Of a stretch of 64,000 nt of DNA, positions 32,565 to 38,877 are shown piece by piece. This stretch comes from Utricularia gibba (Eukaryota; Plantae; Magnoliophyta). The position numbers were made by a program, and so were the translations under genes. Each line of letters begins with the position of its first letter. Position 1 is the first letter of the stretch. The stretch spans positions 248,001 through 312,000 of the forward strand of contig NEEC01000015.1 of assembly GCA_002189035.1 (NCBI GenBank), in the 5' to 3' direction. The notes beneath the pieces were generated by a model. It had not been told where the DNA came from. It saw only the letters and a program-made list of their open reading frames with translations, and did no database searches.

Positions 32565-35068
32565 TCAAGCCCTGTCATCTTCAAATTCATGGCCGTGATC
32601 CAAGAGATAGTTGGCAGCCAGTTCCTCGTTCTTGTTGCAGGCAAAGTACACCTCCAGCACCAGCGCGCGGTCGAACCCCATGGCCTCGAGCTGCCAAGTT
32701 TGTTGTGGCAAATGCATTGTTTTTTCGACATGTGGGGAAGGTAGTTTAAATCGGCCGGTAAAAAGGAAGCTTACCCTTTCGATTGCTTCACCCTCCTCGG
32801 GAGTTACTGTTACTGCCTGTGGCATTGTGTCAGCAAGTTCTCCAAGAACGTCCCTGCAACAGGAAGAGAAACCACAGAAACTCCTCTTGGTAAAGATGGA
32901 AAATCTGGTGTTCTTTAAACGAGAAAGGCAACGGTGGAATGATGGATACCCTTCTCCACCCTCAACGTTTTCGTTGATAAGACGAATGAAGTCAGCTTGG
33001 TGGTCTTGGATCACTCTAACCAGTTGGGGATTTTGCTTCCCCAACTCTTGAAGCATAGGCTGCCAATGTAAGTCAAATCAGTCTTCCCGACAAATGAACT
33101 CGAATAGTAAGTTAGTTAGCATTTGTAACAAAAACCTGCAGAATTTGTGGGTTGGCCTGCACCATTGCTCTCAAGGCTTGGAACTGAAACACATAGTTTC
33201 AAGGCAGCAGCACGGTATAATAAGTATTAAAAAGCAGAAACGCCATAAATTCAAGATTTGTTTGTTTCCAATAACATCACACAGTACCTGCGAACTATTT
33301 CGAAGGAAGTCCAGGGTGTTTGCCCCGCCAACATTTTGACCAAGATTTGGAACACCCTGCATGAACAAAACCAACCTTGATAGCATATACCGCGCACGCT
33401 CAGAAAACAAAAAGTGGGTGGGGGGAGGCATTAATCAAGTGTGAACCTGTGGGAATAGATTCAGTGGATTTGCGTTTGGTCCAGTTGGCGGTATAGATGC
33501 TGATTGATCTTGTTGTGGAGCAGACACATTAGCAGTTTGTCCACTAGGTGAATCTGGAGACGTATGGCTAGCCTCGACCAACTGCGGGATGCCCTAGAAT
33601 ATGATCCAGAAAGTAAATTATGGAAGAATGAACCCATGAACAGCTTCACAGGAAGTTTAAGCTGCGCTTTACTAACAGAATACAAATATTCGACTGCTCT
33701 CTCGGGATTGTTGTAAGCAGCACGAAGTGCACGGACAACTTCATCCCTCTCCCACGTTCCAGCACCCATATCAAGAATCTGCTGGATTGATCCCTCAAGG
33801 TTGCTTCCAGGAACAAGATTGGGGGGTGCTTGACCAGGGGATCTGACAGTAACCTGAGTAAATGCATCAATTGAAATGAAATGAAACCCCTTGGCAGGGC
33901 CAGAACAGGGGCGCTAATAGGTGTAGAATTGTGCAGCACGGGATTTCATGAAATTAATGATTCAAAAAACGCAACACTGGTAAGAATAAACAGATAAATA
34001 AACAGCAAACAAGTGATGCTGAAACATATGAGGCTTTTTCAAAGTGGTTTCTGGAGAAAGAAATCTCACTCTGAAGCACGGGGCTGAGTTGGGTGAACTG
34101 GAACAACGCTAGGAGGTGGCGCATTTCCATCAGGTTTCTGTGAGGCAAGAGACATAAGCATAGTGGCATTGAGCCTTTCAAAGTGTCTCACTTTACAAGC
34201 AGGTAATTGAAATTGTTCTATAGTTAACACACAAATAAAGTCACAAATCCCCAGGGCTTGCCTTTGAGATCATTGTTAAATGGCAAAAAGGACAACAATA
34301 TCCAGAATTACCTTTGCAGTAGAAGTACTAGATGTTGTTGAACCTTCACTAGAGGGGCTTTGTTCTATAACAAACCAACAGAGGATGATTATCTCAGTAC
34401 TCAAAAATAGCAAATTTAGAATACATGGTTGAAAGAATAAGAGGCAGAACGAGACGCAGAAGATAATTAGGTATGCTGAAGCAATTGAAGTGCACCTTTT
34501 TCAACATAATGACAACAAAACTGTTTTCCGCAACATTATTCTCTTCTAGAGTTGACGAGTCTTCAAGGACCTTTCCCTGATGGATAAGCATCTGTTCTGA
34601 TGCCGGATAATCTCCCTTCGAAGTTTCTATGATCTTCTTCACATCAGCAATCTGAAAATAAACTGGTAAGCGTCAAGCCACCACAACCGTGATGGTCAGA
34701 ATTCTCATATTGCACTCATGCAGTGACCAGTACAGCCCCAAAGACATGTTTTTCCCAATCACCGGAAACACAAGAAATCGACACATTATCGGAATGCAGC
34801 ATATAAACAATATTACCGAAATCAATTGCTACATTCTCGAAACAACAAGAAGAGATGGACTCCAAACCCCAATTCCACCAACAAAGAACATCGCACTTTG
34901 GCGCAGCAACAAAAAAAAAAAAAACCACTTCAATCCGAAAAACAAATACGACATTAAAATCCAATCACTAGAAGAAAAAGAAAAAAAGGGTAAGGGACAA
35001 ACGGTATCTTCCGGTTTCACTTCGATTTCAAAGCGAGTCCCCTTGAGAGTTTTGACGTAAATCTGCAT
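32565..35068 (-). CDS. RAD23: Ubiquitin receptor RAD23 (UBL-UBA-XPCB-UBA); probable 1-bp indels in the linker exons as assembled
   Basis: [22 protein letters not shown]|IADVKKIIE (UBL), [36 protein letters not shown] (UBA1), LDFLRNSSQ|[16 protein letters not shown]|[13 protein letters not shown] (XPC-binding), [32 protein letters not shown] (UBA2). Confidence 0.93.
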
Positions 35069-35099
35069 CCTAAGCCCTCCTGCGAGTAATCCGGCGAAT

Positions 35100-35520
35100 G
35101 AATTCTTCGAAACCGCCCACGGAATCGGCTCGAAAAACGCCACCTAAACCCCACCGACCGCCGTGCAGGTAATAACTAAACTCTTTCATTCTTCAACCGT
35201 AACTCTATGCATGTATATATAGAATAAAAATTATACGACGGGAAATTTTCCCTGAAATACAATTAAAAATAATTAGCCCCATAAATATTAAATATTATTA
35301 AGAATTTAAAATCGGACATTAAAATTAAATGTAAGAAGGTTTTAATCCCGAGCCACACAGCATACTTATCCCTAGCCGTTGGATTAGCGCACGTGCAATA
35401 CGCGCAACTATTCTTGAGCGTTGATCTGCCGGTGGGCCAATTTTATAAGGCCCGCAAGGGAGGTGATAAATAGCCCAAAATATCTGCACTCTTGTGGTGG
35501 CCCAAATGGGTGGAGAATGT
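35100..35520. promoter_or_regulatory. Short head-to-head intergenic region between RAD23 (-) and the CRF leader (+), with site II (TGGGCC/AGGCCC/AGCCCA) elements
   Basis: RAD23 ATG is at 35068 and the CRF 5' leader begins around 35500. GGGCC/GCCCA motifs at about 35433-35510 and a CACGTG at about 35389 lie in a GC-richer island next to an AT tract. Confidence 0.45.
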
Positions 35521-36060
35521 CTTTATTTCATAAATGTTTTAGGTGAAAATCAGGCTGCTAGAACGAAGGAACCCCGAGGGGTGAATCGCAGTTGGAGGGA
35601 GGTTTTACCCGATGCTGGAGTGAGTTTATGGGTGGGTCAATGGCGGCTCATGTGGAATGAGAACGCCATGGAGTTTTTAATAAAGATACCATCTTTGTCT
35701 GTATTTCTAGGCGGTTTTATTGCACCGGTGACTTTTGTACCACTTTGTTTGCAGCCCACGTTTCTCAGTTTTATATTGGCAAGAGACGTGGAGGGTTCTG
35801 GGCAGTACAAGGGAGTGTTGTCGAAGTGGTCCATATCGCCAATTTCAATCTTCCGTTGATAGAAGATTCTGATCTTCAACCACCGATCTCTGTTCCCGTC
35901 TTCTGGTTGATGGGTACTACTCTGTTTCTCTGTATGGATTCTTGTGTCTGATTAATTTTGTTTCGTTCCTCTTTGCAGGGATTTTATGACGCACAGTCTT
36001 AATTTGGATTCTGTTCTTCCGGCCTTTTCAAAGCTCTGTTTGTTGAAGCAGAGTGAATCG

Positions 36061-36225
36061 ATGCGTTTGAGGCCCAGAAGGTTAGTGGAGAGTTGATCCC
36101 TCTTTCTCTTCTTTCTTGGAAACTGTTCCTATCTGCGATTCCGGCCGTGTTTCAGAACTTGTACGGGAGTCGTATGTTTTGGGTGTCATCACATACAATC
36201 GATCCATAAACCACCGGCACCATGA
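36061..36225 (+). CDS. Conserved-peptide uORF of CRF10/11/12-type ERF genes, split by an intron (36081-36155)
   Basis: ATG CGT TTG AGG CCC AGA AG|gttagt...tttcag|A ACT TGT... gives [29 protein letters not shown], resembling the MRLRPKRTC..V..FG.H CPuORF known upstream of Arabidopsis CRF10/CRF12. An in-frame ATG at 35986 could add 25 aa. Confidence 0.8.
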
Positions 36226-36848
36226 AGAAACTTCGAATCATCTGCGCCGACCCTTATGCCACTGACTCATCCGACGATGATGAGTACAACAAAATCAAGA
36301 ATGTTGTTTATGAAGTTTGTTTCCGATTCACCGGCACCGGGAAATATAGAGGCGTCCGCCGTCGGAAATGGGGAAAATGGGCTGCTGAAATCCGTGACCC
36401 GATTCTGCGGAAAAGGGTCTGGTTAGGAACTTACGAAACTCCAGAGGAGGCATCAGAAGCCTATGAACTGAAGCGATTGCAAATCGAAGGACTGGTTAAT
36501 TCTCAGCAGCAAACTCATATTCCTGCTGTTTCTAGCGAACGAGTCCATGAAACAAGCCTTGTTGATCACAAGGGCACTGAGTCGGCCGCAGATGAGGGGC
36601 TAACGCGTTTGGCACAAATCGGAGAAGAATTGGATTTGGATGTCGATATCCATTCTCTGCTAGCAGAGGATTTTATGCATCTCAGTAAGGCTCTCGATGA
36701 TCTCCCTCTTTTTGGGCCTGAGGATCCTGGCTTCCTGCAGGCATTGCCTGACTTCGACTTCGATTTCGACGACTCTTGGATCCAAGATCACGAAGCTCCC
36801 ATGCCTCACAGAACAGGTGCATCTTCATTCAACATAGCATGCCTGTAG
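36222..36848 (+). CDS. Cytokinin response factor-type AP2/ERF (CRF10/11/12 clade)
   Basis: CRF domain [21 protein letters not shown] followed by the AP2 domain [41 protein letters not shown]; C-terminal SSFNIACL. Confidence 0.9.
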
Positions 36849-38877
36849 TGTGTTGCAGAGCATTACTGCTCTAACTCTGCCGCGTCTCGCAATGCTGGTT
36901 TTTTGCAAGCACCGCCGGGCGCAAATACCGGATCCAAAACGAAACCTCCGATGACCCACGAAGCTCCGATGACTCACGAAACAGGAGCATCTTCATTCCA
37001 CACACCATAACTATAATGTGTTTGTTACCAATACTGTATTATTTCCACCGTACGGCTCGCTGTACGGCTTTGATGTACCATTGCCGCCGTGATTTTGTAA
37101 ATATTCATTCTGTTCTTGGTTTATTGTCTTTTGTAAAAAAAAAAAACCCTAAAAAGGTTTGGGCCGAAGCCCTAATGATGCTTTGGGCCCACGTCTGATC
37201 CCATACCGTTTTGAGAAATAAGTGCACCGGCCCAAAGGCCTCAATTTGATGAATACTGATATCACGATGGAGGGTAGATGTCGTTTATTAAGAAAAAAAA
37301 AAAAACAGAACCGTCATGGATGACGTCATTCACAAAAATTTCAAATTCCCAAAGGACGCCACCTGAAATTTTATATTAATTAAATTTAATGATTTCGTGG
37401 CGCAATTGTTTAAATTAATAAAGATACGGACTGGCAGTAAATACCAGAATTTTATAATGAAATAAATTCTCGGGCTTGTGACAAACACAATTCCCCAAAA
37501 TAAAATAAAAGAAACTTATTATAATTATTTGGTACAATTTAAAAAAATGTCTTCTTTGAAATATATATTTAAATGAATAAAAATAGAAACAAACTTAATT
37601 GAATACTTATTTTATGAATTAAATGAATCGTATACTAAGACGTATTTTATAAGGGATATAAAATTATTACTTTATTAAAAAAAAAAATTTCTCATCCATG
37701 GAGGCCATGTGTCCACTAAATGTAACATAACATTAGGTGTCCGCCCTGTGCGGGACAAGCGGGCTATAAAGTATTCGTACGATAATGTTGAAATAATAAA
37801 ATATAATATAAGATCGGATCTAGCCTGCCCTTTTCGTCGTCGTTTTGTGTTGGGAGAAAGTATGTTAATAATGGAAAATCAGATGTTCACAGGGGCTGGG
37901 GTGTAATTTCATGGCCCCACAAGCCACATCCTGGGATGCTGCTGACCTGGCGCCAGCTATCCCTCTTTTTCTTTTTCTTCAATTTTATTAATTTAACAAA
38001 ACACCCACATTGCTACTAATTACCAATCATATTATTTTTAAAAAATGTCTTTCAACCACAAAAATTCATCAAAACGGTTGTATTAGATTTTAAATTATTT
38101 TTGAAGAGAAATAAACATGTTATTTTGGTAAATACAGGAGTTGGTACCGGACTCGGTTGGGAGTAAAGTCATCCACACCCGAAACCGCGGCTGGATGCTT
38201 CCTGGAATCTTTCTTTCTTTCTTTCACATTTTAATTAATTATTGGAGAATTAAATTATTTATTTTGTGTTTATTAAAAGTGTGGACAAATATGAACTGAA
38301 ATGGAAGTGAAATGTGACATGGTGGATTTCACTCTCACACATGATGGTCAAATTTGTCTATATACGATTTCCACTTTTCTCATACATTCAAAAGATATTG
38401 ACCACGTTTGTAACACATCCATTGTATATAATATGGTGCTGGTGCATGGGTAATTGGATGGATCCATCCCTATTGTATTATTTTTTTCCGTGTATTATTA
38501 TTGTTTTTGTGTAATAGTACAAAATGACAGCGCAGCTTAATTATGAAAACAAAACATATCTGCCATGATTTCAGACTGGAAGGTGGATTCATTTCATTAA
38601 ATCCACAGTTTTTTGTAAGAAAAATAAAAAAGTGAGTGGATTAATTTGTGAGGTAAATTTATTTTTGGTATAAATTGGATTTGCTGAGTGGAGGTTGAAG
38701 GGGTTTGGAGAATCTGCAGCAAATTTAGGGAACTCAAAATTTCTCCACCATCTTCCACTGGACGGAGGGACGGAAGGAGATTGCTCAAACACAGGGCAGA
38801 TATTGAGTGAGCATGCCGGTGGCGCCACCCGTATGCTTCCGTTACGGTTACGGACAAATCTAGGAACTATCTAAGGA

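Follow-up and report, generated by a model that had tools for sequence, protein, structure and literature searches.

A shortened HG21-type uORF whose stop codon overlaps the start codon of a CRF10-type gene in Utricularia gibba

The leader of a CRF gene in Utricularia gibba carries a conserved-peptide upstream ORF (CPuORF) that is divided by an intron and ends on the start codon of the main ORF. The window analysed is a stretch of 64,000 nucleotides (contig NEEC01000015.1, positions 248,001 to 312,000), and all positions below are those of the window. Comparison with other plants indicates that the uORF belongs to homology group 21 (HG21) and that a deletion moved its stop codon onto the main AUG. 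The group itself is known and has been catalogued since 2007; what is new is a shortened variant with its stop on the main start. With moderate confidence, we read the locus as an HG21-type CPuORF which, after this deletion, acts as a repressive gate that ribosomes pass by leaky scanning. The features of the gene are as follows.

35755 to 35905, plus strand: leader exon 1 (X1 contig 35755-35906, X5 contig 35804-35906); the 5′ limit is a contig end only
35906 to 35978, plus strand: leader intron 1, 73 nt, GT..AG (joints reported as 35904 to 35978 and 35912 to 35978, cut +1, in X1 and X5)
35910 to 35912, plus strand: extra uAUG, found by translating the isoforms; part of the mRNA only with donor 35913 or with leader intron 1 retained
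35979 to 36080, plus strand: leader exon 2, which is uORF exon 1 (sequence, contigs, orthologue comparison)
36081 to 36155, plus strand: uORF intron, spliced in X1, X5 and X8, its position kept in seven other genomic loci
36156 to 36225, plus strand: uORF exon 2, (R) and 22 residues followed by TGA (sequence, alignment, profile match)
36174 to 36209, plus strand: nested out-of-frame uORF of 11 codons within uORF exon 2 (sequence and translation)
36222 to 36225, plus strand: ATGA, main start and uORF stop (sequence; X10 contig of related organism B)
36222 to 36848, plus strand: main ORF, 208 aa (domain and homology comparison)
36849 to 37121, plus strand: 3′ UTR (contigs end at 37113-37127)

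The uORF intron is 75 nt long, of GT..AG type and in phase 2, with an Arg codon divided AG/A (a slash marks the intron position here and below). Its donor is CAGAAG/GTTAGT, with the exon ending at 36080, and its acceptor is TGTTTCAG/AACTTG, with the next exon starting at 36156. After splicing, the frame from the internal ATG at 36061-36063 (context TCGATGC) has 29 codons and that from the in-frame ATG at 35986-35988 (context TTTATGA) has 54 codons; the spliced frames were checked by translation and the homology searches were run exon by exon. The TGA at 36223-36225 overlaps the main ATG at 36222-36224 (ccATGA, 36222-36225). If the intron is kept, the uORF from 36061 ends after 11 residues, with a TGA ending at 36096. 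Leader exon 1 contains no ATG, and none is found between 35668 and 35910. All of this anatomy (the uATG at 36061, the 75-nt intron, the 29- and 54-codon forms, the early stop on retention and the ATGA, which can be read directly at 36222-36225) had been proposed in an earlier sequence-only reading, and it was confirmed in the sequence.

The host gene was assigned from its product. The encoded protein opens directly with a CRF domain, contains an AP2/ERF domain and carries LPDFDFDFD and NIAC motifs towards its C-terminus; its best matches are ERF118 (= CRF10)-type proteins of Lamiales with 33-51% identity, the top identity in the protein collection being 50% where 45% of the query was covered, and 40% for the full length. 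With no close relative of the protein in that collection, the plant was placed as a divergent species in or near Lamiales. On these features the gene is of the ERF118/CRF10 type (group VI-L ERF). The protein is shortened to 208 aa, compared with about 290-370 in relatives, with deletions on both sides of the AP2 domain. Four shorter CRF homologues (P0073, P0082, P0090 and P0104) were considered as close relatives with the same truncation and rejected: they are not close, and their N-termini are normal.

To place the uORF, eight orthologous loci were dissected: Sesamum (L001), L004, Phtheirospermum, Erythranthe (L006), Cucumis, Trema, Escallonia and the cDNA contig L011. An orthologous uORF was found in all eight, and the family core MRLRPKR/TC... 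was present in every orthologue fetched. Sesamum uORF exon 1 used as query returned 13 small proteins, and a profile of 11 of them returned 239 proteins from asterids, rosids and Caryophyllales, mostly of 73-102 aa and nearly all unnamed; several have locus tags next to that of the CRF gene (CDL12_22225/22226, ACJIZ3_020113/020114, U1Q18_002331/002332). The family consensus starts with MSASFDL..VVFGAP.KLCF, continues with a variable Ser/Cys-rich middle and closes with FFPTVSMRLRPKR/TCSGVECFGGYHINRLF.LFLFLRGPLT. Against the 11-protein profile, exon 1 of the window (35986-36081) gave an hhalign E value of 1.1e-6 and exon 2 (36157-36222) one of 1.9e-8. Since the two exons match the profile separately, the likeness is more than chance.

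HG21 is the CPuORF group of At1g68550 (CRF10) and At1g25470 (CRF12), with peptides of 87-90 aa that are Ser/Thr-rich and have conserved N- and C-termini (PMC2075485, PMC3426882), and the consensus obtained here fits that description. The window uORF is of HG21 lineage by descent, the link to HG21 being made through the host gene, length and composition, and species overlap with PMC2075485. The claim of a conserved-peptide uORF of CRF10/12 type is thus borne out, the core being present in every orthologue and both exons matching the profile. The start at 35986 had been described as merely giving an alternative 54-aa form; its frame stands, and it proves to be the conserved start of the family, window FMTHSLNLDSVLPAFSKLC aligning with FMSASFDLAVVFGAP.KLC and the TTTATG context being kept. 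ATG 36061 is an invariant internal Met of the family, in an invariant TCGATGC context.

The intron is likewise shared. It follows MRLRPK, with the codon split AG/G, at the same place and in the same phase in all seven other intron-bearing loci (the named assemblies of Sesamum, Phtheirospermum, Erythranthe, Escallonia, Cucumis and Trema, together with L004), where its length is 98-244 nt, and the spliced cDNA contigs L011-L014 read straight across the site. The Arabidopsis HG21 uORF was cloned from cDNA because of an intron in the region (PMC5587730). The split of the uORF is an old, fixed feature of the eudicot family. Its fixed position and the near-invariant flanks described below appear not to have been discussed in the accessible literature.

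The window uORF shares with HG21 of Arabidopsis CRF10 and CRF12 the host gene type, the core (MRLRPKR/TCSGV.CFGGYHI in eudicot orthologues), the conserved N-terminus and an intron in the uORF region. It differs in having 54 codons, compared with the 77-95 codons, both ends conserved and a Ser/Thr-rich middle, that characterise the group (87-90 in Arabidopsis), and in its stop codon, which lies on the main AUG and not inside the 5′ UTR followed by a spacer. The N-terminus and core are kept; a middle of about 23 residues and the tail NRLF.LFLFLRGPLT are gone, so that family homology in exon 2 is limited to the first ~14 codons.

The missing parts are accounted for by a deletion. In the eight other loci, 118-240 nt separate the uORF stop from the main ATG, and published spacer lengths are 95 nt for Arabidopsis and 150 nt for rice (PMC2527020); the window has no spacer. 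In the DNA alignment, homology runs from the acceptor through CATCACATA, after which 239-256 nt are missing, and resumes at CC ATG A(A/G)G AAA. With it went the uORF tail that is conserved in the family, the intercistronic spacer, and the ancestral main ATG with 28 codons: in the orthologues, which begin 28 codons earlier with MPEPRKP, the counterpart of the window's main ATG is a conserved Met inside the protein (PMRKVRIIC). The loss of about 240-255 nt therefore brought the uORF stop onto a UGA overlapping a formerly internal Met that is now the main start. All orthologues already have ATGA at this internal Met, so a uORF arriving in the right frame stops there, a one-in-three outcome and not a design. 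As aligned, the overlap is a lineage-specific by-product of the deletion. The question of whether it is conserved, raised by the earlier reading, was answered in the negative: the orthologous leaders all have a spacer, and the overlap is not a family feature.

The mechanism that we favour starts from the initiation contexts. None of the uAUGs at 35986, 36061 and 36174 has G at +4, and each is preceded by a pyrimidine at -3, where the main AUG has A; the ATG at 36174, which opens the nested uORF, lies in the weak context CGTATGT and is derived from conserved Val-Cys codons. Under the start-context rule for Arabidopsis as quoted in PMC5587730, the weak uAUG contexts set against the A at -3 of the main AUG make leaky scanning to the main ORF probable. 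Some 40S subunits would leak past the weak uAUGs and start the CRF protein at the main AUG. Ribosomes that translate the uORF would terminate with the main AUG inside their footprint and so mask it, and after 29-54 codons and with no spacer they would seldom reinitiate. The uORF would then be a repressive gate, in which any pause caused by the core peptide would turn directly into occlusion of the main start. An adjustable input would be likelier from leader intron 1, by adding or removing small uORFs, than from the uORF intron. The host, of the order Lamiales, evolves fast and has compactly structured genes.

Within the family, a translated and repressive uORF is shown for Arabidopsis CRF10 only. 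There the uORF bears ribosome footprints, and the translation efficiency of the main ORF rises in phosphate starvation with mRNA unchanged (PMC5699049); CRF10 and CRF12 are both listed among genes with translated uORFs (PMC10896292). The earlier reading also stated that such peptides often stall ribosomes, which is not supported for this family. When 22 CPuORFs including HG21 were assayed in wheat-germ extract, those of AT1G70780, AT4G36990 and AT5G53590 were arrest-positive and HG21 was not among them (PMC5587730), and the window uORF lacks the C-terminal tail as well. The absence of strong arrest for HG21, the loss of the tail and of the Ser/Cys-rich middle, and a raised pN in the core are counted against the gate.

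Constraint on the core was estimated from 22 codons. Among other taxa pN was 0.074 and pS 0.27 (ratio 0.27), and between the window and other taxa pN was 0.169 and pS 0.33 (ratio 0.52). In the same genes pS was 0.27-0.40 in the core versus 0.70-0.76 in the AP2 domain. From rosids to asterids, the last 11 nt before the intron and the first 15 nt after it vary little or not at all, third codon positions included (L001, L004-L006, L008-L011), and the window breaks three of these otherwise invariant positions. For a small sample, this pattern suggests extra constraint at the nucleotide level on the splice flanks of the family and relaxed constraint in the lineage of the window. With core pN about twice that of the family, any peptide-specific action may have been weakened or lost.

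These values also bear on the reading of the uORF as a decaying relic, whose peptide ceased to matter after the deletion and which would be at most a generic, sequence-independent uORF in the course of being lost. The higher pN/pS ratio in the window, the loss of middle and tail and the shrinkage of the main protein all point that way. Against it, the window keeps an open frame across the intron, both uATGs and their contexts, both splice sites and the splice phase, and 16 of 21 core residues, while the rest of the leader is unalignable. We consider a relic unlikely, and retain the leaky-scanning gate as the preferred account.

RNA evidence was obtained from a search of sequencing runs, which gave ten matching runs from four studies, all with contigs of transcriptome-typical size. 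One run per study (X1, X5, X8 and X10) was compared with positions 35000-37500. The joint 36080/36156 (reported as 36078 to 36154, cut +2, GT..AG, skipping 75) was present in the main gene-spanning contig of X1, X5 and X8, three runs from three studies, which establishes that the uORF is split by a real intron, as had been predicted. Depth in the two bins that include the intron is exactly accounted for by the spliced contig (in X1, 181 x 22/84 = 47.4), and no contig retaining the uORF intron was found in X1, X5 or X8. As contigs lose rare variants, the spliced form is proven present, and a rare retained-intron form may escape. The contigs span 35755 to about 37121, so both uATGs lie within the mRNA and transcription begins at 35755 or further upstream; a transcription start downstream of 36061, which the earlier reading had named as fatal to its proposal, is not what was seen.

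The intron that varies is the first of the leader. Two donors, 35905/35906 and 35913/35914 (the latter giving a 65-nt intron), share the acceptor 35978/35979, and the intron is also retained (X1 record 4, X5 record 15, and X8 record 19 at 35885-36078). Use of donor 35905 adds no uAUG. With donor 35913, ATG 35910 opens a 4-codon uORF, MGIL, whose TGA at 35987-35989 overlaps the CPuORF ATG at 35986; this second ATGA overlap is specific to the window, orthologues having ATGT and no stop. With leader intron 1 retained, the uORF from 35910 has 13 codons and ends at 35951. In Utricularia gibba the uORF intron looks constitutive, and leader intron 1 is the variable one.

This result bears on the two-layer switch put forward by the earlier reading, in which production of the conserved peptide would be controlled by regulated retention of the uORF intron, with the AUGA overlap as a second layer; on retention, translation would end early at 36096, and the 125 nt left before the main AUG would permit reinitiation. 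The geometry is correct in the sequence. The near-invariant intron flanks and a core pS about half that of AP2 form a pattern frequent at regulated splice sites, and the uORF intron is present in Sesamum indicum contigs L002 and L003, both of which start about 28 nt upstream of its donor. If these runs are RNA, such starts are what an assembly graph would give where spliced and unspliced forms part. Set against this, no retained contig was found in three studies, the splice sites are good, the low synonymous divergence comes from 22 codons only, and the window itself breaks three flank positions. An apparent retention RNA of a relative, P0121 (a 57-aa ORF ending in MRLRPKR and then a stop, in 10 contigs), was rejected as genomic, as it carries about 1.6 kb of upstream DNA; L004, from the same run series, is probably genomic as well. 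With the intron removed in all three RNA-type sets and its position ancient, the proposal that splicing decides the peptide is not supported, and we consider the two-layer switch quite unlikely.

Overlaps of a uORF with a main start are known from other systems. In the ATF4 uORF2 type, an out-of-frame uORF overlaps the main start and the ribosomes translating it are largely lost to the main ORF, and in viral termination-reinitiation at AUGA or UAAUG, reinitiation takes place on the spot. The window uORF resembles both in ending on the main AUG. It differs in having no delayed-reinitiation uORF pair, no 18S-complementary element found, and an overlap that is 4 nt long and evolutionarily recent. 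Stop-start coupling of the viral kind, in which ribosomes ending on the UGA would step one base back, reinitiate and feed the CRF ORF, is suggested by the AUGA itself, which is unchanged in related organism B, whose contig (X10 record 9) is 100% identical over 36154-36362 and hence shares the overlap. It is very unlikely, since the overlap was born of a deletion and no other family member has it, the frame had its one-in-three chance at a Met already followed by A in orthologues, and a uORF of 29-54 codons is long for reinitiation. No UGGGA-type 18S-complementary motif was found in the sequence read upstream of the stop (36156-36225). Also highly improbable, though the near-invariant flanks and the low core pS speak for it, is a combined reading, in which the HG21 uORF intron would be a eudicot-wide regulated splice switch and the 54-codon version a functional core through which a peptide-dependent pause would directly mask the main start or be coupled to it.

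The splicing of the leader and its small uORFs have parallels. As in plant S-adenosylmethionine decarboxylase (SAMDC, HG3), a very short uORF overlaps the CPuORF start in the donor-35913 isoform; unlike in SAMDC, the mini-uORF of the window is found in one splice isoform only, is not conserved and is unrelated in sequence. The overlapping tiny and small uORFs of SAMDC were described by Franceschetti 2001 and Hanfrey 2002/2005, as cited in PMC10896292. Splice variants that alter uORFs are known from AT2G27230 (PMC5587730), and variants that fuse uORF and main ORF have been reported (PMC7106846). The window is like the AT2G27230 type in that leader splicing sets the coding of uORFs, and unlike it in that no alternative form of the window uORF intron was seen.

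The locus can be regarded as a natural HG21 deletion mutant. Both weak-context uAUGs, the core MRLRPRR/ with 12 further residues, and the intron with its phase have survived strong genome compaction, and at least one lineage can do without the Ser/Thr-rich middle, the conserved tail and any spacer; surviving and lost parts give a direct guide for reporter constructs. The locus also marks a blind spot, as it will be missed by pipelines that demand a stop in the 5′ UTR (ESUCA, PMC7106846) and by ORF finders blind to splicing.

Some further observations concern the surroundings of the gene. A diverged copy of the last ~20 CRF codons (36786-36848) lies within the 3′ UTR at 36955-37010 (HEAPMTHETGASSFHTP, then a stop). 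In related organism B, 18 nt are missing at 36946 and 12 nt at 37050. The upstream neighbour (34829-35176, minus strand) is a divergently transcribed gene, with contig cover up to 35176 and about 580 nt between the transcripts, and we take its N-terminus to be a ubiquitin-like domain of the RAD23 type. On either side of the CRF gene, at 37135-37215 and 35430-35510, there are a telo-box-like AAACCCTAA and several site II-like motifs (TGGGCC/GGCCCA), which probably belong to the neighbouring promoters.
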